A DNA stretch of 56,056 bases. Origin: Paramoeba atlantica. Its lineage: Eukaryota > Protista > Discosea. The stretch is from positions 1-56,056 of the forward strand of contig CDRNVI010000081.1 of assembly GCA_977017575.1 (NCBI GenBank), given 5' to 3'. This document shows, in pieces, positions 3,735 to 54,132 of the stretch. The stretch's first letter is position 1, and every line of letters begins with the position of its first letter. The notes under the pieces are model-generated. The model had not been told where the DNA came from. It saw only the letters and a program-made list of their open reading frames with translations, and ran no database searches. The position numbers and the translations under genes are program-made.

Positions 3735-6269
3735 TCATGAAGTGAGCTTAGTTAAGACACTTTTTAGCACATGGGCCATTCCTGCTCTAACGCTTTTTTC
3801 CACCATCAGTTGTAGATGCGAACGATACAGAATTCCACTTAACCATAGTGGGGACCCAGGCTCGGTCTTTGTACTTTCCGTAACAGAAGTTTCATCCTTT
3901 TCTCCCCAAGAGAATTCGCCTACCTCTCGAAATTTCTCAGGAAGAGCCTCGTGCGAGAGCTCCAATGAAATCCACACAGGACCGGGGGAACAGCAGGAAT
4001 CAAAATCCTCTTCACCCGGTCCGCACAACAACCTTTCGTCCTGCAAAAGAGTGAGCATTTGCGCCGGTTTCTGCAAACGTACCACACGACGCTGGTCCGT
4101 GTGGGGGGCTACCCAACGAGCTGCCTCAAAGGTAGGACGCCAGGAAAAAGCTTCATAACCTTGGTGCACGTTTGATTTGTACAATATCCCCCCCTCTGTT
4201 TCCGAACGCTCCTTGATAGAGGTAGGTGGCAATTGTTTGTCTACTGTCGTTACCTCCCTTTCGCCAAGCTTCGTGTTTGTCCCCTCCACTTCTTTTTCTC
4301 GCCCTTCTTTTCTTTTTTCATTGATTTGGAACGCACGAACCCCACACATGGTGATCACCTCCTTGGCCCCTTTATACACCCAGGCATGAAGCATCACATA
4401 GGTGCTAAGGGTAAGGCACATCACCCTTTTGGGTTCCGAGGGAGTGTGGTCGGTGCCATGTACGACGAGACAAAGCCCCTGTTCGTGTCGTAGTCTCACG
4501 GCATCAAGGCCATAGAAATGTTGAAAATAGTGAATCTCGGATTCGGTGAGATCCCGGTACCGTCGGTACCCACCCCAGTGACCGTAAGGGGTGGTTTTAA
4601 AAACAGAAAGAGGAGTCACGGTGGAAGGAGAAACCGATGGAGTACTATCGGAGCCATTGGACAAACCAAATGGGGGACAAGGCTCTGTGTATCTTCTCCT
4701 TTTTTCGTTTCGCACTTCAGGAGAGGAAGGAGGGCAGGTTTCGCCCCCCTCCGAAACCTCCTGCGCGTTGCGCACAAAAAGGGCGAGAAAAAACCCGCCC
4801 GTGTTCTGGGTGTGCGGTAACACCCGACCACACATTCTAACCACTTCGTGGTAGCTCGGCGCATTCTTTTCACAATCCTCCCATTTGGCGTTTTCATCCT
4901 CTTTATCCGCTATTCTATCCTTTCCAGCCTCCTTTGGCACCGCGAATTTCACATGCGGCAGCATTTCCCGCACATTGACCAGCCTCACCGATAAAAACGA
5001 GCGTTTCACCTCTTGCAACACCTTCCACACCACCTCCTCGTTCTCTACCGGATTCATACTACACGTGCTGTACACCAGCACCCCCCTCTCCTGCAGTCTC
5101 TCCAGTCCCCTCCTCAAGATCTCTTGCTGTGTTTTTTGTAAATTTTTTCCATACCCTTCCTCCCATCTCGGGAGCACCGTATTGTCCTTTCGTGTGGTCC
5201 CGTCTCCGGAACATGGCACGTCACACAGAATGCTCGAAAATTTGATAAAACATTTTAAAAGAGTAGAATATAAAAAAGGAAAACGACGAGCGTCCCCGCG
5301 GGTACAAAACACCCACGGGCTCTGGGCTCTTTTGAGTCGAGCCGGGAGAAGCTGTGTCGCCTTGGTGTGGTCTTTTTCGTTGCACACCAAGACACCCTTT
5401 TTTTGAATTCCCAAAAGAGAATCTAAAAAATGAAGGGATTTGGATCCCGGAGAGGCGCAAAGGTCGAGGGAAAAGGAATAGAGAAAAGAAGCAGGAAGAG
5501 AGGGCGTTTTTGTGTTTGGAGAGGAAGGTAGAGGGAAAAGATCGTTTTTTTCGGAGAGCGGATGAAATGCAGATGTGCTGAAATTCGAATCCTCCCTTTT
5601 TACGTCTATCGAAGAAGACACAGATAATGGATGGCTTTTTTCAAGGGGAGAGGAATGTCCGGAAATAAGATGATTCGAAGGACTTGTTTTTGTACCCATT
5701 GGAGAAGGCACCGACGAAACATCCCCTTTTTCAGGGGAAGAATTATCTCCGGAAGTAGGACGCTCCGAATCATCTACTTTCGTCTCCATCGAAGTGGGCC
5801 CGGACAAACCATAAGTCGATGGCAGCTCCGATAAGGAACGAGTAGCGGAGAGCAGTAAGTTCACCGGTAACATTGAGACGGCCTCCTGAAATGTCAACAG
5901 ACCGGCACTGTGGAGTGTAGTCACCGTTTCATGGGTGTTGGGTTCGTCAAACTTTGTGTTGCTACAAGAAACGGCATGGGAAGGGAAGACACAACAAAGC
6001 GGCGTCAGATGGTGCGTCTGGACAAGGATGTGACACACGAGCCAGTGCCAGGGATGGGAGAGGGTCAGACGAGCGGTCATGGGGAGCGGCTCCGTGAGCA
6101 TGTGGAGAAAGTTTTCCCAATCGGCAGGAAAGTGGATAAAGTGGTCCAGAACGGTTCGGTAGTACGACAGAAAAGACTCCGAGGGGGCGACCACAGCGGT
6201 GTTGCGACGGCGTGAAAGACGTTCGTCTCGCTGAGAGGCGTAGAGGGAAGGGGTGCTCTCGGAAGCCAT
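3735..6269 (-). CDS. NSUN2: NOL1/NOP2/Sun-family RNA (cytosine-5)-methyltransferase, NSUN2/Trm4-like, 844 aa
   Basis: Ordered RCMT motifs LDLCASPGSKS (I), LCDVPCSGDG (IV), YSTCSMNPVENE (VI) and PHTQNTGGFF (VIII). Intron-less, with a Ser/Pro-rich insertion before motif I. Confidence 0.92.
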   Translation of the reverse strand: MASESTPSLYASQRDERLSRRRNTAVVAPSESFLSYYRTVLDHFIHFPADWENFLHMLTEPLPMTARLTLSHPWHWLVCHILVQTHHLTPLCCVFPSHAVSCSNTKFDEPNTHETVTTLHSAGLLTFQEAVSMLPVNLLLSATRSLSELPSTYGLSGPTSMETKVDDSERPTSGDNSSPEKGDVSSVPSPMGTKTSPSNHLISGHSSPLEKSHPLSVSSSIDVKREDSNFSTSAFHPLSEKNDLFPLPSSPNTKTPSLPASFLYSFSLDLCASPGSKSLHFLDSLLGIQKKGVLVCNEKDHTKATQLLPARLKRAQSPWVFCTRGDARRFPFLYSTLLKCFIKFSSILCDVPCSGDGTTRKDNTVLPRWEEGYGKNLQKTQQEILRRGLERLQERGVLVYSTCSMNPVENEEVVWKVLQEVKRSFLSVRLVNVREMLPHVKFAVPKEAGKDRIADKEDENAKWEDCEKNAPSYHEVVRMCGRVLPHTQNTGGFFLALFVRNAQEVSEGGETCPPSSPEVRNEKRRRYTEPCPPFGLSNGSDSTPSVSPSTVTPLSVFKTTPYGHWGGYRRYRDLTESEIHYFQHFYGLDAVRLRHEQGLCLVVHGTDHTPSEPKRVMCLTLSTYVMLHAWVYKGAKEVITMCGVRAFQINEKRKEGREKEVEGTNTKLGEREVTTVDKQLPPTSIKERSETEGGILYKSNVHQGYEAFSWRPTFEAARWVAPHTDQRRVVRLQKPAQMLTLLQDERLLCGPGEEDFDSCCSPGPVWISLELSHEALPEKFREVGEFSWGEKDETSVTESTKTEPGSPLWLSGILYRSHLQLMVEKSVRAGMAHVLKSVLTKLTS

Positions 6270-17762: not shown

Positions 17763-18052
17763 GTGTGCTCCACATGAGACGAGAAAGTACGAAGGTAAGA
17801 CGGTAATAAGGTCTTACGAAGGTAAGACGGTAATAAGATGGTAAAGAAGGTAATAAGGCAAGTTAAGGTAAGGCAATTTCGTTCCCACTACTGTTCTGTT
17901 CGATTTTCCCTAATTACTAGCTCATTCCACTAATTGTTATTTCATTCCACTAATTACAAGTACATGCTAAAATATTTCCGCCCAATAATAATACAACCCT
18001 ACTTATTTTGCCTATAAATCGAAATTTCTTTCAATCGTTTCATTCTCTCTCT

Positions 18053-19042
18053 ATGTTTGGCATCTCGACAGCACAGGTGCGGGAGTTCTACAACGAGCTC
18101 CGAAGTGTGCATGGATCCGATGTTACGGAGACTGATTACCGTCGTGTTCAGTCATCATTGTGCATCTGTTCTCTGAATTGCACATGGGAACAGTTGTACG
18201 ATGTCCAAAGGGCGTGGCTCTCACCGGATGCCCCGTTGATTTCAATTCGGACTCTCCGGGATGATTCTACTCGTGTGGCGCAGCTGTGCCGTTCACCCCT
18301 GCTCATGAACCCTGAGCTACGGTTTACCCAGGGAGTATCATGGTTATCTGACGTAACCTGCATGCTGGACGTCACGACGATCCCATGTCGTGCAAGAAAA
18401 CCGAGAGAAACACCTGATGAAACCACCCGAGATAGCACCTATTCGGGAAAGCACCGGCAACACTGCTTCAAGGTGGAAGTTTGGCTAACACTGGCCGGAG
18501 TTCCATTTTTCTTTCGCGGCCCAGTTGTTGGCAGCATGCATGATGCCAAAATTTATAAGAGTACTAGTGTGCACCGCACTCTGCTGTTCACTCACCACAA
18601 AGATGAAATGTTCTTGGCCGATCTAGGGTACATAGGTTGTGCGCACTGCCTTGTACCCTATAAGAAAACTGGCCGTGGTCTCACCGATGATGAAAAACGT
18701 GTGAATGAAAGGATTTCACTGATTCGCTCTCGAATTGAGCGACGTTTTGCACATTTCGACAAGTTTCGTTTTCTTCATGGTACTGATCATGATATACCAT
18801 GGGTCAGAGACGCTTTTCAAATTGTTTCTGTAGTTACGTATGGACTGCTGGCTACTCAGCCGCAGTATGATTTCGATTCGATTATAAATTTAAGTTTGAA
18901 ATCTACAAGTGATGAAGGTGAGTGTTTATGTAGTAAAGGGTGCGGTGTAGTTGATGGTATCGAAAGCCGCAGAGAGTGGCTTAAGGAAAACATAGATGGC
19001 GTTGCCTGTGAGCCTAAAAAATCAAATAAGTGTGCTAAGTAA
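18053..19042 (+). CDS. DDE transposase, IS5/PIF-Harbinger type (DDE_Tnp_4-like), 329 aa from the first ATG
   Basis: Motifs MLDVTTIP (D1), YSGKHRQHCFKV, GSMHDAKI, LADLGY (D2), PYKK and NERISLIRSRIERRF (E). Confidence 0.9.
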   Translation: MFGISTAQVREFYNELRSVHGSDVTETDYRRVQSSLCICSLNCTWEQLYDVQRAWLSPDAPLISIRTLRDDSTRVAQLCRSPLLMNPELRFTQGVSWLSDVTCMLDVTTIPCRARKPRETPDETTRDSTYSGKHRQHCFKVEVWLTLAGVPFFFRGPVVGSMHDAKIYKSTSVHRTLLFTHHKDEMFLADLGYIGCAHCLVPYKKTGRGLTDDEKRVNERISLIRSRIERRFAHFDKFRFLHGTDHDIPWVRDAFQIVSVVTYGLLATQPQYDFDSIINLSLKSTSDEGECLCSKGCGVVDGIESRREWLKENIDGVACEPKKSNKCAK

Positions 19043-20549: not shown

Positions 20550-21534
20550 CTGTCACCCCCCCCTTTATACTTCCGCCGGTTTCGGTACTTTTGGAAGTAT
20601 AAAGGCGGGGGTCTGACTTTCGGAAGTATAAAGGGGGGGGGTCTGATTTTTTGAAAAACTCGCGAAACAAATATTTTTGAAAAAGGGGCAAAAAAAAATG
20701 CGCCGCTTCGCGGCGCTGGTTTCCTATTATTCTATCTAAAAATCAATCATCTAATCTCCAAACATGCAGGGCACAATGGTTGCTGCCGTGTTTCACTTGC
20801 ACACAATCAACATACGCTGTATATTACGCTGTAGTGAATACGTGTCGGGACGATCTACCATTAGAAGCTTCATGGGACAGTCTTTGAAACGAGGTACATT
20901 CGCCTTTGCTGCAGCAGGCGCATGTCCGCGCTGGCTGTCATCCCGCCCAGTTCGCTAAGGAGGAGTTCGTCATTTTTTTCGCATCTCGACATGTTTGTCC
21001 TTGTGCAAACCCCATCGCGCTTGCGACTACGATAGATTTACTTTTTTCTGGAAAAATCCGACACCATTTTTTCGGATGGAGCGGATGGTTCGAGATCAGA
21101 CGCCGTACTTCTCGCTGATTTGTGGAGCACTGCTACTCGAATGACACACATTCAACTTCTCCTGCATTGTTGGGTTCTTTCCTCCCTGGGGTGAACCGAC
21201 GGACACTGGTAATGTCGCAGGCTCCGCGCTTGAAACCATTATTTCGTTGGGAGGCCGAACGCGATGAAGAGGGGGATAAAGCTTAACCCACTGTGAGTAT
21301 TGACATGGGAAAAAATACGGCAAATAATTTAAATGTATATCTAGCAATATCTCTACACACATCTCTAACGTTTAATAAAAAAAATGTAGAAAATTATTAT
21401 AAAAAATGCTTCGCGGCGTATTTTTTTTGGGACCGGAAGTATAAAGGTGGGGGGCTGATTTTTCATCTGGATGAAAACGGAAGTATAAAGGGGGGGGGTT
21501 GACCCCCCTGAAGTATAAAGGGGGGGGGTGACAG
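20550..21534. mobile_element. TA-flanked non-autonomous element with CTGTCACCCCCCCCTTTATACTTC TIRs
   Basis: TA|CTGTCACCCCCCCCTTTATACTTC ... GAAGTATAAAGGGGGGGGGTGACAG|TA, with several subterminal GGAAGTATAAAG(G)n repeats. Confidence 0.88.
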
Positions 21535-21724
21535 TAATTACAAATAGAAAATATACAGTGTTATATTTAATTACGGTATTATTTAATTACGCTTTTAAGG
21601 TTATTTTTGGCTAAAATTAATCTTAATCAAATTAACCGTAATATAATCCACTCGTAAATTAATAATTTTTGAACACACTTTTTGAGTAACGTTTAAGCGC
21701 CTAAGCCATTGGATTCGTCTGAGA

Positions 21725-24169
21725 TCATTTTATAAAGGTTTGTGTTTCGCGCTGACGTAGTTCCCTGGCCATTTGCTTCTGAGAGAGCTTCTCCTCCGGG
21801 AAGAACAGGAAGCGTTTTACCGAGAGAATGAGGTTCCAGGCGGTCACAATCTTCTCGTCAGGGGATTTAGATGGGAACCTACGGCAAACATGTGCTAAGT
21901 GCTCTCTCCACGCGGGGGTCTGGACTGCATAAAGTTTGCGCAAAGAGCCCCTCCCCAACAGTTCCGCCAGGTTTTCGGGGGACGGGGCGTGGTCGGTTCC
22001 TTCTGTATACGCGCTCTGTGTGCATGGGGGCATAACGGACGCAGGTTCGGACGGGATTCCGGCCGTGTGTGCGGGCTCCGGCTGGAGGGGGCTGGCCGTA
22101 ATGGCCGCCGCCGCGATCCCTTCGAGTATCGTCCCGCTGACGAGCGGGGTGGGCACCCCCATAAGGACCGGCGCGAGGCTGCCTTCCTCGGAGTGTGGCT
22201 CACCGGCGTACTGGTTGCCATCCCCATGACGAAGGAAGTTCGGTTCAGAACCTTTCGGGAGGTTACCGGCCTTTGCGGGAATGCTGTGGGGTTGCGGGGG
22301 GGCCCTAGCCTTAGGGGGGGATGTTACGTAAGGGCTTGAAGGGAGGCTGCGCACGACAGACCGAGTATTGCGAGTCTTGCGGTGAGGTCCCGGGCTAGCC
22401 TCGATACAGCCCCGTCTCAGGTTGCATCGCACCAGTTCCGTCGACCACCCCGAGTCGGCGATTAAACCCTCAGAAGGGAGGAAACACCAGTATACGGACC
22501 CGTCTTCCGCCTCGAAAGGGGTCCATGCACATGCGAAGTCGTGAGCTAGTGCCAACGTGTGGCAAAGGAAGAAGGGAATATTTTCTGCGGGGAGGGGGGA
22601 TTTCGTGTTGATGCACGAGCCGTGTGTTGTTCCGTCGAACACCCTGACATGGTGTCCGTATGGCGAATCGTTGAAAGGTACGAGCAGGGTGGCCCAAATG
22701 CTGGGCGAGGCGCCCACGTCCTCGTCTGTCTCCAGGTAGGGGCCTCCCTGGTCGCTGGTTAGACATACGCGGTCCGACGGGACCCCTAGCGTGAGGCCGA
22801 CTGTGTGAGCTAAGCCTTGGAATGGGCATCCGGGTGGGACCGGAACCATGATGTGCCCCATCGCGTGGGGCCCTAGATGCAGGTTAACCTTGGTCCAGAC
22901 CTCCTCATGGAGTTCCGGAGGGGGAGGGGGGGCGTCCCTGGTGGGCCGTGCGCTCCCCCCGACTGGTGGCGAAATCGAGGGGCGTCAGCCATAGGGGGCG
23001 GCGGAGAGTTTACTTCAATGTGCCCACTCGCCGGGGTTGTCGGGGCCCTGTTTACTAAGGCGATGCGCTGCAGTTCCCCGAGCCACACGTTGTGGAGTTC
23101 GGAGGCTGAGGCCCACTGGAGGTCTGAGATATCTGAAGTTCCCCACCGGTGTTCCTTGAGAAGGTGGGCGGCGGTCGCGCGGACAGCGGCCTGTTCGTGG
23201 ACGAGCTTATGTTCCGCCAACTTCCGCTGATCGAGGAAGACTCGCCCATAAGTATGACAAAGATGTGCTCGATCCTCGACCAGTTCGCGTTCCCTATGCT
23301 CCTGCCTCGCGTCCTGGCAGAGTAGGGCGAGCCACTCTGAGATGATGTCGTCCCGCGCCCTCGCGAAGTCGGCCTTCAGAGCTCGGGCAGCGCTCGCTAG
23401 ACGATGCTCTTCGACTTCGTGTCCGAGTACACTAGGTCCGAGGACACTCCATCCTTGCGTCCCGTATTGAAGAGAGCCCCCATAATTTCGGCATTCTTAG
23501 ATGCTATGATCGCAAGTTGGTCCTGGAGAGGGGGTGCTTTGTCAGTTACGGTGCCGGAGGGGTTCTGTACCTTGGGTTGATAGGCGCGGAGGGATGGGTG
23601 AGAGCAATCCGGCCTTGTCCGCGTAAGAGTGGGTCAAATGGGTGGGCGTCGGCCGAGGGGCGAAGGAGACCTGGGAGGAGGAGCGGGTGCGGGGGCCTTC
23701 GGCTTGACGGAGGCTCGGCTTGCGGGGAGCCGACCGGCCCCTGGACGTGGCGCGCGTGGGGGTAGAGAAACGTGAACGAGAGCGTGTTCTACGGCCTGGG
23801 GATGTGTCCCGTCCCGGGGAGATTCTGGCGGGTGATGAGTGGCTACCAGAGCTCTGGCGTTCGGCTCGGAGTTCAACACACCCCGGGCATAGAAGGTTAA
23901 AAGGTCGCCTCGGGGAGAAGGGCTGCGCGCAGAAACCACACGGCCGGTTGTCGAGGGAGGAGGAGGCCCCCGCGTGACGACGGGGGGAGGTCTGCTTGGG
24001 TCCACCGTGGGCGGGCCCGAGAGAAGAGGAGTGGTCCCGTGGAGATCGGGACAATCGTCGAGATGAATCAGCGCACGGCTGGCGCATCCGGTGGGAGGGG
24101 GAGAGTGGTTCATACTTCGAACCACAAGTTGCGCAAAACAAGATTCCCTGGAGCGGGGGTTTTGCCATG
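21725..24169 (-). pseudogene. Frameshifted N-terminal region of a probable CRE/R2-like non-LTR retrotransposon ORF (RT part absent)
   Basis: GC-rich broken ORF with CxxC-H-C and CxxC-CxxC clusters, an SR-rich tract, a degenerate C2H2 finger CHT(Y)GRVFLDQRKLAEHKLVH (23197-23259) and a 2A-like LRRGCIEASPGP. No RT is present, so the family is inferred. Confidence 0.55.
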
Positions 24170-24201
24170 GAGGTAAAATAACGAAGAAAGAGGAAATAAT
24201 T

Positions 24202-24238
24202 CAACAAGGTACAGAAACTGTATCTTATCGTTAAAGTT
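24202..24238 (-). ncRNA. Spliced-leader (mini-exon)-like 37-mer AACTTTAACGATAAGATACAGTTTCTGTACCTTGTTG, with no GT donor after it
   Basis: Starts with the cap-4 sequence AACT, contains the conserved euglenozoan SL core ACAGTTTCTGTAC and ends in TTG. Followed by a 32-nt leader and an ATG. Confidence 0.82.
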
Positions 24239-25035
24239 AAATCTTTATCGGTAAAATGATATCGCAGAACATAACCTATTGAACACCAATTTAAATTTTA
24301 GAATTACAAGACGCTGTGGAGCAAATTTATGATCAAAGCGATGATGAAACTGACATGGAAGAAAACCGTTCTGAATTAGAAATGGTTCAACGAATCTAAG
24401 TAATTCCGGATTGCTCCGATTGGTCACTGGCAGGCCAGACCCTTCACATGTAGATTTGAAACTTTCGAGGCCGAAGTCCTCTACCTGTTTTCGTTAGTAC
24501 AAGGCGGCAACAACGTGCTGCTACCAACCCGTTGCGTCGACGAACCCAAGACAATCTTCAAAAGTTATCATTCCTGCAGCTACGTAGCATTCCTGTAGCC
24601 GTTAACATTCTCCCCGGAACGGTAAACCGGACTGTGGTTTAAAATCCCGGTATGACGGCGTCGTCTTCACCAAGAAAGTTGCACCAAGAACCTTTGTGCA
24701 TCGATCTTTGTGCGCCATCTGTGTCCCCCCCTTTGAAGACCACTGGGCATGGCCCTGCCTCGCCTTATCCCGATGCAACAGTCGGTTGCAGTGCACCCCT
24801 CCGGCTGTGTAAAGAGGTGGTAAGTTGTCTGGAGAATCTGACACCCCCCTTACTTCACCACACGTCCAGTGACTAAATGTGGTGAAGTAAGGGGGGAGGC
24901 GAAGTAAGGGGGGGTAACGGTATGTGGAAGCCGGGTTCAGGCGGGGGGTGCAGGGGGTCTAGGAGAGTGCAGGGAGGCTCTGCAGCTGGCAATGAAACAT
25001 TCTAAGGATTCACACAGATTGATGCCCATACATGT

Positions 25036-36904: not shown

Positions 36905-39144
36905 TTAGCGGACACCCGCCTTCCTCCACTCTTTTACCGCGGAGGATAGTATCGCGGCGTTGCCTTTTTGAACAGCCACATTAATGGCTTGTAGTGCATG
37001 ACGCAGGAAACCTTTCCTGTCATACGTATACCTTGCGATCTCCTTTAGGAGGAGTACAGTGCGCTTCCCTGCCACACCAAAAACGGTAAATGCAAGGGGG
37101 TAGAAATGCATACCCCTTTTCGTGGCCATGTCACTGTGCGCTTTTACTTTCAAGCTTTCCACCCTTTCTAGAGTGTTGCCAGGCGCTACCCATTCGGCCT
37201 TAACATAAGAAGGGGCGAGGGGGTTAACAACGGTCACGTCCACCAGACATATCTTCCCTCCCAGCATAAAGCAGACGTCGGGGCCCTGACCAGCAGAGAA
37301 TCGGGGTTCATGATTGTCAGGAGTGAATCCGTACTGTCGTAGCAAGTGCACGAAGGCATTCTTAACAAGTTTGTGGCGAGTGGCCGCAGTGTCGCCTTTG
37401 ACTTTATTGCAGTCAAGGGCGTGCACAACAAAATCTTTGTTTGAGAGGATGTCTCCGCACTCACATTGTGCGAAAGGGTCCGAAGTAGGTGCTATCAAGT
37501 ATCGCATGCGCATGGCTGTTTGCCATTCTGCGTCGCGCATGAAGTACTCACCCCGATTCCTACGCGCCTCTGTCCAATTGCGCGTTCTCTTGTCTATCAA
37601 CTGAAGTGAATGGACGTCATGTAGTTCGCTGGTTTCTTTACGCACTGCTGACTTCGACTCTTCATATCTTGTCAAGGCAGAACGTCGTCTTTCCATACAC
37701 CCTAATACCTCAGCTTTTGTGCGAGAATACAGAGTTGCCGCTTGCTGCGCAAAAGGTTTCGCCCCCAAAAGGTCGCCCGTCATGAGAGTACTGTGAAACG
37801 GGTTCTTTTCCAGGTCTTCGAAGCCTCCTAGCAGCTCTGAGGCACACTCCTGTATGGCCTTGTCCGCTAACACGTTGGCTTTTGCCGTTACCTCCGGCTG
37901 ATGACACCGCATTAGGTAGTCCCACCGGGGGACTCCACATCTCTTCAGCAAAATGTAAGCACTTTGTAACGAGAGATGTTGCAGCCGATCCAGGAATGTC
38001 TGCAATTTAGGCATTTGGTTGACTACCCATCTGGTTTCATCCGCGCCTTCCTTGGAGACGAATGCACCTAGGAGCTTTTGTCCTTGCTCCGCATGCTCTA
38101 TGTTCATAGAGCTCTGAAAGGAGCGTACTGGTCATTGAAATGCGTCGAAAGCTTACATTTGGCCGGATGTACCTCCAGTCCTATTCCCGAAGCGTGATCA
38201 CAGAGAGCGCCAAACGCCTGTGCGACACGTTCTGCCGGGCCGATGATTGAAAGGTCGTCTAGGTAACCCCAAAGCGTCAGATCACTGAACTCATCCTTCA
38301 ATTTTCCAAGAATTTGGTGCAAGCCGAGAGAAAACAGTAACGGTCCTAATGGGTCGCCTTGTCGGACTCCCCTCAGAACCTTAGTCGGCGAACACGAGGA
38401 GTTAAATATCGTAGTTGGAGCCCCATATACATACATGTATGAGGTCACCCCGTATAGCTCGTGAAATTCATCATTTCCCCTTAGATACTGAAACACCGCG
38501 CTTCTTTCAATTGAATTGAAGGCGTTACGGATGTCTACTGTCAAGAGCACAAAGTCCGCTTTTTGACGAAACGCGTTTCTTGCCCTTAATATTATTTTAG
38601 GTCCTCCGTTTCTTGTTCCAACACCAAATTGTGTATCTTGGAAAAGTCTGCCCGTTGCTTCTGCTACCCTGTCCATGGCGATTTGGCTAGCCAATTTAAG
38701 AAAGATTTCCCCCATTGCTATAGGTCGGCAGGCTGGGGATCCTTCTACGGAAGGGCCCTCCTTGCGCAGCAAGATCAGAGTGGAGCTGGTTAAGACGTCC
38801 CTTAGCTGAGCGTCTCGGGAGTTTCGCAGCACTGCTGTAGCTATCCAAGTAACGCAGGCCACGATATCCTGGTCCTCTAGGAGCGGTATAAGAAGTTCGC
38901 GTGTCCAGCCTGATGGGCCCGGCGCGGATCCTTTGGCGAGCTTTCTAGCCCTGTCAGTTAAGGTTTGCTTTTCGATGTCCATAGATTTTGCCGGCAAATG
39001 TTTATAACCCCGAAAGGCCTTTGGGTGAAGTCGATCTATGGCCTTAGCGATCTCTTCAGTAGATAGTGGTTGTCGTTCCTTCGCCTCTAGCGCTTTTGCC
39101 GCTTTCCCGATCGAAACGTTGTATTTATACAATACAAAAAACAC
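36905..39144 (-). mobile_element. 5'-truncated CRE/SLACS-like non-LTR retrotransposon (RT + CCHC + restriction-like endonuclease), one frameshift at ~38105
   Basis: RT motifs GSAPGPSG, RPIAMGE, VDIRNAFNSI, GVRQGDPLGPLLF, YLDD, GLEVHPAKC and KLLGAF, followed by CECG...HALDC, RHKLV, PD...DVTV and ESLK (REL nuclease). Confidence 0.92.
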
Positions 39145-45270: not shown

Positions 45271-47000
45271 CTAATATCGAATCTTGTGCCCATTGGCAGC
45301 AATACACACTTCTAGCCGTTTTTCGAACGTGCTGTGTAACTTCTTGGCCGTCACCCTGCCTTCAAGAGAGAGAAAATAACTTTGCGACACTCTTTTTATC
45401 TCCTCAGAAGTCCGAGGAAAGGTCTGGTTCTTTGCGTGTCGAATTCTTGCCCAAAAGTTCTCTATAGAATTCAAATCCGGGGAGTCTGCAGGCCATCTGA
45501 AAGGATTTTTGTCCCCTGAGTAGGGCATGTACCGCAAACATTGTGCGCAATGTCCGGAAGAGACATGCGTGTTCCACCACAGCTGAGTCTTCTCACTCGT
45601 GTGTGGAGAAGCCCCGTCATCCATGTAAACGGCGGTGGAGTTCAACTCACAGTATCGAGTCCACTCCGTATCGAGGATTTCGCGACGATAGTGTAGACTC
45701 CCCAATTTCAACTGATCAGGAAGCGTTTCGCGCTTTTCTCCAGGGCGCAGGGGGCGGCTTAGCTCGTTCGCATAGAAAGTAGAGAAATTGTCGCACCAGT
45801 GAAAGATAAAGGTTCCCTCTTTATCGATACCTCCCCATATCATGACCTTAATGGGATGGAAATCTCGGTTGCGCGCAACTCGATCATAATGACTCTGCCA
45901 AGTAGACGTGGAAGAATCCCCTTCACAGATAAACGTTTCATCAGTAAAAACAAGGCTCTCAAAAAACTGTCCTTCCGTTCGTTCATTTTCCTGAAGCATC
46001 GCCTTACAAAAATTTACGCGGGCCTCCCGCTTCCGAGCACTGAGATGCAGTGTGCGTTTCTTTGACCCATATGAGTAATCATAGTAGTAATGCAACGCAC
46101 GCATTCGATGACGTGAAACTTGGATGGATCCCTCGCTTAAGTTTACCATAGCCCTACGTAGGTAATTGAGGGATCGGTGTACCGGATGCTTGGCCATAAC
46201 GCTGGCAAAAAGATCCTTGGCCTCTTCGGCGCTACTCCATCCCGATAGAGTTCGACGAACTTTCTCAACTTTTTGCACGCGCAGCGTAACAATTATGGAC
46301 TGGCCGTCAATTTTTCTAATCAAGCGACTACATGTTTGCTTGGGCAAAGTAAACATGTAGCAAAGATCCGCTTGACAGAACAAACCTGTTTGATATAAAC
46401 CTTTTAAAAGAAACAACCCAGACTCAGTTAAACTGCCAGGCTGTTTGAAAAGAACAGTTAAGTGGCGTTTTCGTTGATTTTTCTTTTTCGTCGGACGACC
46501 CCTTTTCTTTCCTACGTTTGGCCCTTTTTTCTCAAGCAGTGACGCGCTACGGACCTCAGTTAATAAATGAAGTGTTTTTTGCCTCTCGTTTGATAAATTA
46601 GTGAAACGTGTTTTCAAATCCTGACACTCTGCGCGAGCTTTGCATTATCCTGCTTTAAAATTTGCACTTTTTGTTCCATTTCTGTTCTCCGCGTTTCGGC
46701 CTCCATGAAGTCCTCCGCACTCTTAGCTCCACGCTTCTCAAGAGTCCTAACCTTTCTTTTGGTCTTGCAGAGTTTATTACGCAGCCTCTTGATAATTGCA
46801 TCCTTGGCATTGATTTTTTTCTCCAAGGACTTCAATTGTTCGTCACTTGGATCTGAAATTAACTGTGTAAGAGGTGCTTCCTTTTCAGGGGACAAAGCGT
46901 CAAGGCTGGTGTCGTCATCAGCTCCGCGCGATACATCGGAGTGCAGACCCTTTATTTCCCCTACCGCTTCTAGAAGCTTTGCGTCTAACCCAGGCGACAA
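45271..47000 (-). pseudogene. Tc1/IS630-like transposase (DD51E) with an upstream coiled-coil ORF overlapping by 4 nt, probably one frameshifted gene
   Basis: Motifs VFTDET, KVMIWGGI, YMDDGASPH and WPADSPDLNSIENFW. The HTH segment GSLTESGLFLLK resembles GGLTDSGKVLLK at 9.0 kb. The 448-aa ORF has no ATG before the HTH. Confidence 0.87.
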
Positions 47001-52381: not shown

Positions 52382-54132
52382 TTAAAATTTGAATACGCTC
52401 CACTCATCATCGAGTGACTGCCACCAAGGGTTCCCTGAATTAGACCCGGATGGAGATTCTTCCTCCTTATCAGCATCGCGTAGGGCTTCAGGAACGGAAC
52501 CGTTGTATACGTACCACACATCAGAAGCCGTGTCCCACTTGGCAAACCGTGTTGGAAGCTTGCTGAGTTGTAGGTTCTTACGTGGGGGATCGTACACACA
52601 AATCTTATCGAGGCGATTCGGTGCCTTACTCGCATCCAGATAAACTAAAACTTGGTTGGTGAACAGCGAAAGGAAATATGTTGAGTGGGGTAGCTGAGAA
52701 ATATCAACCACCCCCTGAAACTTGTTTCGTGCCAGCGCTAGCTGTGTGAGACCGGAAGGCACTTGTGAGAAGTCAAGTACCCCTGTGAAGGAGTTATTGT
52801 GCAAGGAAAGGACGCGCAGACCACGCGGCAGAACACTCAAATTAAGATACCCCTCCAATCGATTGTGGTCCAGAAAAAGCTGATTTATTGTATGTGGCAG
52901 AAAGTCAAAAACCACATTACCCGAAAAGTCGTTCGAGTCAATGGTTATGATCATACGCTCGTGGCGCAGAGATACGTCTCTCTGTGTGACGGCCGATACC
53001 ATCGGCGCATGACCCGCATACGACGGGTGTCACACAGAGAGTGGAGTGCGAGGTAGGAGACGAGACGCCCATCGGTCATGCTACAGCACGTATAGCCATG
53101 GTTCATGCTGCAACACGGTCAAGCCGTGGGTTCATGCTGTCAGATGGTCTATCGTGGATCATGATGCATCATGGGGAGGTCCGTTACCGCCGCACTCGCT
53201 ACAGCATGTAGGGAGAGAGGGGTGCAAGTTCGCATCCCCTATACACGCATACAACGTGTCCTCCCGCTGTAGCACGCCCAGTGGTCCTCAAGGGAGGCCA
53301 CCATGGCGCATAGCTCCCGGGAGAAGAAAGCACGAGAAGGAGAGAGTCGGGGAGGGAAGAAAGCTCACTCGAAGAGAGCGAGCCGGGGAGGGGTGAAGAG
53401 TGCGAAGTGCGTCCCCTACTTCCGCGACAAAGAGGGACAGTTTCAGCTAGCCGTCAGCCGGAAACGGGCATTTAAAAGTAAGAATATGCCCGTTTCCGGG
53501 AAAAGAAAGGAAGGGCAACAAGGTACAGAAACTGTATCTAAAAGGTCTCGTAATGTAGGGGGCAAAGCGGTGAGGTCCACTTTCCCTGTGCAACAATTTG
53601 ATCTTGCCCAAAAAAAGAGCAACGTGCGTGGAAGTTCGCTAAAAGCAATTTCACCATTCAACTTGTTTCCATCTAGAAAACAATCCTGAAGTTGTTCCGC
53701 TGAGTGCCCAATATTGATTGGACCTGTCAAATGATTTCGTTCCAAAAAAAGTTTTTCTAATGTGTTTGGAATAAAGGCAAAGTTGAGGCTGCCTTGAAGG
53801 CCCCATGACGACCAATCGATTGAGCGGATCGTACTGTTTTTAGATACTTGAACGCGATCCCAATTTTCAGCAGTATTTTCTACTGTCCATGAGGGACGTG
53901 GATTCGAAATATTCGCCACGAAACGAGCCAAATGATATTCGGGGGCCAGTATTGATTTGTGCACTTTTGACGGCCTTACATGAGAGGCGTCAGAATTCAA
54001 GACACCTGAAAGCATTGTGGTACAATTTGTAACGGATTGTGGAACCATATAAAGAAAAAAACTAACTTGTGAAAGTAAAACCCCACTTAGGGTAACCCGT
54101 ATAAATGGGTGTTTACATGTAGGTGAATACAT
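52382..54132 (-). pseudogene. LRR protein gene split by a 596-bp insertion
   Basis: The N-part ends ...DLTALPPTLRDL (53542) and the C-part resumes TIDSNDFSG (52945). Rejoining them restores the LPxxLxxLxLxxN register. Confidence 0.88.
52946..53541 (-). mobile_element. SL-headed, structured non-coding insertion (candidate retroposed RNA/SINE-like element)
   Basis: Begins with 24 nt identical to the 3' part of the SL-like sequence (53539-53516). Contains a 14-bp perfect hairpin (53458-53499) and a three-way junction (52978-53041). No long ORF. Confidence 0.75.

Follow-up and report, generated by a model that had tools for sequence, protein, structure and literature searches.

The minus strand of the window (the whole 56,056-nucleotide stretch of DNA that was analysed) carries, from position 24238 to 21748, what is probably the dead retrocopy, made from RNA headed by a spliced leader (SL), of a non-LTR retrotransposon of the R2/CRE (restriction-like endonuclease) type. 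The RNA template of the element would have borne the host SL at its 5′ end; target-primed reverse transcription would have reached that end, so that the leader became the first 37–38 bases of the new copy. The new copy would have landed at a break in a 790-bp repeat, and the window copy would afterwards have lost its 3′ part and gained frameshifts. An earlier reading of this DNA from its letters alone (the sequence-only reading) had offered two explanations, insertion of a CRE-like element into an SL gene and reverse transcription, through the cap, of a trans-spliced element mRNA. Our analysis best supports the part of the second that concerns reverse transcription of SL-bearing RNA to its 5′ end; that trans-splicing had added the leader is something we infer. 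R2/CRE-type retrotransposons headed by the host SL are apparently an undescribed, genome-wide habit; a literature search returned papers on the CRE clade, on the Pr77 promoter and on SL-tagged retrogenes of dinoflagellates, and none that described retroelements headed by an SL in a kinetoplastid.

The features of the locus, with the evidence on which each was placed, are as follows:

24254–24923 (−): one copy of a dispersed repeat (~790 bp) that is interrupted at repeat position 677, where the SL-headed element starts (BLAST)
24239–24253 (−): junction filler of 15 nt, in which 13 bases match SL nt 6–18 with one mismatch, followed by TT (sequence comparison)
21748–24238 (−): whole retained element, 2491 nt, a 5′-complete, 3′-truncated, degenerate copy of a ~4.4-kb non-LTR retrotransposon bearing a reverse transcriptase (RT) (BLAST)
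24202–24238 (−): the SL exon in DNA form, making up the 5′ end of the element; 37 of its 38 nt are present, the AAAG run being one A short (sequence reading and the exon of the SL RNA genes)
24169–24201 (−): 5′ UTR of 33 nt, pyrimidine-rich (T/C), starting AATTATTT (the SL–AATT junction is the hallmark of the family)
23542–24168 (−): first open frame, 208 aa, with CX2C...C and CX2C-X14-CX2C motifs, shortened relative to the 437-aa frame of the copy on contig C69 (translation)
21749–22090 (−): start of the RT-bearing frame, which is 772 aa long in the C69 copy and of which residues 6–119 are left here, with everything downstream missing (tblastn)
21550–21749 (−): unrelated ~200-bp repeat at the cut point of the element (97% identical copies on contigs C20, C73, C70 and C44)

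The 37-mer that had been described as heading an open frame is present, letter for letter, on the minus strand (24238–24202). The ATG of that frame (24168–24166, minus strand) directly follows the 33-nt stretch, for which the sequence-only reading had counted 32 nt; the base 3′ of the leader is an A, so the lack of a GT donor reported there stands. The 13-nt SL core ACAGTTTCTGTAC occurs twice in the window (0.05 expected), and the SL match is far above chance. The proposal that the motif gives the SL of the organism was right as to identity, which agrees with the SL RNA genes, and one A short as to length; apart from the missing A, the window leader is the exon of those genes. Because it lacks this A, the 37-mer has only three ungapped near-matches. 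A short-read contig from run X3, which may share the sample of the assembly, covers flank, leader and element (24066–24283). A second SL relic lies in the window at 53514–53535 (minus strand); it runs from nt 17 (ATACAG...) and heads another repeat (CCCTTCCTTTC...) within an LRR-like frame. Two other loci (L025 and L070) hold the element that it heads, and there the SL tail is followed by 14 additional bases, GTACATTTTGCTAG or a variant of it.

Genuine SL RNA genes, for which the sequence-only reading had advised looking (leader plus GT), do exist: the exact exon with a GTATGAG intron start occurs at 36 places genome-wide, and several of the genes form tandem arrays (~2.56 kb or 297 bp). The intron start is found at 39 places and the promoter–exon junction at 34. 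At the five SL gene loci that were read, the true exon is 38 nt long with the classical GTATGAGAAGC intron start, and the region upstream of the exon is conserved over more than 125 bp. Contig C11 carries variant genes, two promoter-linked leaders without the exact core; in the one that was read, the exon is changed by a point mutation and not by an insertion. The conserved region 5′ of the SL genes (L067–L069 and L071) holds a tRNA-like sequence on the opposite strand (...GGGAATCGAACC...). Elsewhere in the window, a conserved NSUN2-like gene (3738–6269) has kinetoplastids as its nearest named relatives (33–37% identity), namely two prokinetoplastid transcriptomes and Perkinsela. In kinetoplastids one common capped leader is placed on every mRNA by trans-splicing, so a mobile element has to rebuild its 5′ end generation after generation or else accept the leader; the second course would be the one recorded, at large scale, in this genome.

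The 13-nt core is present 811 times in the 45.7-Mb genome (248 contigs), as against twice for a reversed control, and 373 copies match SL nt 4–38 exactly. Only about 42 leaders adjoin the SL intron, which places roughly 770 copies outside SL genes. Many of these head R2/CRE-type retrotransposons, beside retroposed SL RNAs. The SL–AATT junction is common to 233 copies genome-wide, and the SL-headed frames that were sampled form one family with this junction in common and only 30–60% protein identity; Pfam searches with ten SL-headed frames from other loci gave sub-threshold LsmAD matches only. Across 29 distinct non-gene contexts, SL nt 5–38 agree with the exon and nt 3–4 are CT in 25; the leader starts with AACT in eight contexts, ATCT in eight, GACT in three and other bases in the remaining ten. 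Variable first two bases fit what is expected at the end of a capped RNA template, and the leader copies may serve as a substitution record for the cap-proximal bases.

The leader is part of the inserted unit, not of the target. An A-run stands directly 5′ of about a third of the sampled leaders and precedes most members of a young family (at least 14 copies at 97–100% identity), and at locus L072 the SL of one element comes immediately after the poly(A) tail of the element before it. A-runs or the poly(A) of another element right before it place the SL inside what was inserted. Retroposed SL RNAs were recognized at three loci (L077, L078 and L079, at C83:133023, C87:74386 and C6:27083); each consists of the exon, ~65 nt of intron and a short A tail, has no promoter and has altered first bases (AGCT, GTAC). 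A 5.09-kb tandem repeat on contig C1 (C1:9759–25049, L004–L007) contains a 46-nt insert made up of the SL and a few bases. A direct repeat, at least 26 bp long, stands on either side of it, and the whole resembles a minimal SL retro-insertion with its target-site duplication. Units headed by SL–AATT are also arranged head to tail with a 2.28-kb period, six at C21:278–11706 and nine at C22:137447–155723. On contig C2, two inverted SL copies (L032 and L033; C2:544636 and 553054–553097) form a near-perfect palindrome centred on the 5′ part of the SL.

Relatives of the window element were found by BLAST of 21400–24600 against the genome. A twin on contig C62 is 98% identical and has its flanks in common with the window copy; given these flanks, the two are one event, and the twin is probably the other haplotype, many loci being paired in this way. 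The copy on C69/C25 is independent, and in C69 its leader is a CCCTG variant. It is ~95% identical to the window by BLAST (96.1% by substitutions only), frame-shifting indels accompany the substitutions between the two, and its homology with the window begins three bases into the SL, next to a flank unrelated to that of the window; the SL junction is retained in both. The copies on C29/C49 are 5′-truncated. Since the C69 and C29 copies continue past the point at which the window copy stops, the cut in the latter is at 21748 and falls at residue 119 of the following frame; the sequence-only reading had likewise called it 3′-truncated, near 21720. The window copy is dead, with no function of its own.

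Pfam searches with the window frames detected no retroelement family (Zn_ribbon_recom matched the first open frame at E 0.024, below threshold), so classification rests on fuller copies. The C69 copy is ~4.4 kb long and its last frame matches RVT_1 (E 2e-17). A sister subfamily, 75% identical in protein to that of the window, matches RVT_1 at E 6e-20, has R2 proteins as its best solved relatives (E 8e-9), contains 147-bp internal tandem repeats and ends in a poly(A) tail. Its C-terminus is ~124 residues longer than that of the window subfamily and aligns colinearly but weakly (domain i-Evalue 80) with the CCHC/PD...D nuclease region of R2. The C69/C25 and C29/C49 copies stop at one and the same 3′ point, three residues past a PD motif, and have different 3′ flanks (C69 versus C29); the window subfamily looks endonuclease-defective. 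A protein search with the RT frame returned no named CRE or SLACS relatives, and an ESM Atlas look-up gave generic RVT_1 clusters only. The earlier description of the open frame as zinc-finger and retroelement-like is therefore borne out in its second half through the RT of fuller copies alone, and its zinc finger amounts to CX2C...CX2C motifs that stay below the Pfam threshold.

A DNA-encoded SL at the 5′ boundary is thus found together with hallmarks of retroposition (5′-truncated sister copies and, in the sister subfamily, poly(A)). A probable RNA origin is indicated by independent copies with the SL at their 5′ boundary, by the truncated sisters, by the RT and by the poly(A) tail of the sister subfamily. 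The window copy, without its 3′ end, offers no poly(A) tail or target-site duplication to read there.

The upstream flank bears on whether the leader might instead belong to the target, the element being a CRE/SLACS-like site-specific insertion in an SL RNA gene or in a relic of one. The family does have a CRE/R2-like architecture, and one related copy, on contig C41, adjoins an SL gene promoter. However, the sequence upstream of the window element is a copy of the ~790-bp repeat, which begins ATACCGTTACCCCCCC and has more than 35 copies at 85–96% identity (in the window and at L040–L063), and it is unlike the conserved SL promoter, which the first explanation of the sequence-only reading had placed upstream of 24238. 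The repeat also breaks at position 677 in a pair of loci with flanks in common (L048/L051), as it does in the window. Insertion of the window copy into an SL RNA gene was rejected, the exon being followed by AATT with no GT donor or intron and preceded by sequence unrelated to the promoter. Inspection of the flanks of fuller copies, the check proposed earlier, told against the same explanation, the C69/C25 copy having the SL at its 5′ boundary beside an unrelated flank. Moreover, the element is preceded by a full exon, not by one cut at a fixed internal position; the first two SL bases differ among copies; what comes after a poly(A) tail is the SL with its element and not AATT directly; and the flanks are not the same from copy to copy. 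A target-derived leader is accordingly scarcely credible.

If the leader came from RNA, the question is how the RNA obtained it. We somewhat favour ordinary trans-splicing of a source copy, to whose RNA the leader would have been added as to any mRNA of the host. The SL-headed copies have no AG before AATT and cannot remake the same junction by canonical trans-splicing. A junction common to lineages only 30–60% identical in protein argues for an SL that may be heritable or linked to a promoter. An 884-nt contig from a run of uncertain nature ("RNA?") contains SL nt 13–38 followed by AATTATTT near its end, which proves nothing about transcripts.

A source of the promoter-linked kind would be an element lying right behind the SL exon in an SL RNA gene and driven by the SL promoter; its RNA would start with the SL without trans-splicing, and the dispersed copies would be dead daughters. 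One locus has this form (L076, C41:280650–281650, with the SL at positions 191–228): promoter and full exon are fused to an SL–AATT-type member of the young family mentioned above, which replaces the intron. There, at C41:280825, the upstream region of an SL gene and a full exon are followed by this related element, starting AATTATTT; the upstream match to the SL genes is 98% over 228 bp, exon included, and between the element and a dispersed copy on contig C1 (L020) the identity is 99.4%. Such a source would account for the conserved SL–AATT junction across divergent lineages, and it has parallels in CRE-clade relatives that reside in SL genes (PMC12278014) and in the L1Tc Pr77 promoter of trypanosomatids, which binds the SL-promoter factors TBP and SNAP50 (PMC8190864). 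Against this, the form is seen in only 1 of the 34 promoter-bearing leaders, the C41 copy runs for 1.36 kb and is then interrupted over about 5.8 kb (from BLAST coordinates), the SL intron is absent from contig C41, and genome BLAST found no such copy for the subfamily of the window. The arrangement could also be secondary, arising from the 38-nt homology between the end of a cDNA and an SL gene; the C41 copy may once have been a source, or homology may have guided its integration. We regard an SL-promoter-driven source as unlikely. About equally doubtful is the related proposal that a CRE-related lineage left the SL genes but kept the complete SL exon, inherited as a 5′ module, with C41-like source copies and dispersed progeny. 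Were it true, the RNAs of C41-like sources would be transcribed and capped like SL RNA, making them translatable and competent for retrotransposition without trans-splicing.

The SL might also have been added at integration, by an RT that jumped from SL-less element RNA onto SL RNA or onto an SL-bearing mRNA. End-to-end template jumping is a known property of the R2 reverse transcriptase. Partial 5′ pieces of the SL are stacked before full leaders in the window (24253–24239) and at L010, L013 and L028, and odd junctions occur in which the SL is followed by a 7- or 10-nt SL tail (L027 and L011). Variable junctions would be expected from such jumps, yet 233 copies have the exact SL–AATT junction, which is also unchanged between the window and C69 copies, and we consider this route improbable. 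A relaxed Rfam scan of four 5′ regions gave no match to an SL family or to any ribozyme, HDV-like or other, although such ribozymes are easily missed.

Similarity to R2 extends to the order of domains, RT followed by a C-terminal CCHC/PD-D nuclease (a weak match), R2 proteins being the closest solved structures by sequence. R2 RNAs carry a piece of host RNA at their 5′ end through co-transcription. In the present elements the host-derived head is the SL, and the 5′ end gave no match to an HDV-like ribozyme; they lie outside 28S rDNA, the flanks of the window and C69 copies not being rDNA.

The architecture of the CRE clade (SLACS, CZAR, CRE1 and CRE2) has been defined (PMC12278014), and the features predicted for the sister subfamily are those of that architecture. 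The hosts belong to the same class, and both groups have a single large frame with an RT, followed in CRE elements by a restriction-like endonuclease motif and in the sister subfamily by a weak match to the R2 nuclease. Common to both are also a poly(A) tail and internal tandem repeats (here in the sister subfamily; the 3′ end of the window copy shows neither), N-terminal Cys motifs (here CX2C in the window frame, below threshold in Pfam) and a close tie to the spliced leader. However, CRE elements occupy one fixed position inside SL RNA genes, whereas those described here are dispersed and own the entire SL exon as their first 38 bases, the window copy lying in an unrelated repeat. SL-headed elements may be an evolutionary link between elements specific to a site in SL genes and LINEs that are dispersed.

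In dinoflagellate retrogenes, a DNA-encoded SL at the 5′ end marks copies of processed, trans-spliced RNA (PMC5585692, PMC12014239), and the SL would here be a similar natural tag of RNA-derived DNA in a kinetoplastid. The tagged units there are cellular genes, whereas the classifiable ones here are retrotransposons (the window family and the 30–60% SL-headed family), several sampled units being unclassified. Relics in dinoflagellates are stacked downstream of a new SL, in contrast to the window locus, where partial pieces lie upstream of the full SL, and the leader here is of the 38-nt kinetoplastid type. The L1Tc/ingi retrotransposons of the same host group also meet the 5′-end problem with a dedicated 5′ module, Pr77, which recruits SL-promoter factors in trypanosomatids (PMC8190864). 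Unlike the SL head, Pr77 acts as an internal promoter, gives rise to transcripts that are not spliced and is not an SL copy, and the endonuclease of those elements is of the APE type.

The window is rich in other transposable elements, with a PIF/Harbinger-type DDE_Tnp_4 frame at 18008–19039 (plus strand), a Tc1/mariner-type DDE_3 frame at 45274–46617 (minus strand) and a second, distantly related (37–43%) RT element at 36908–39144 (minus strand).
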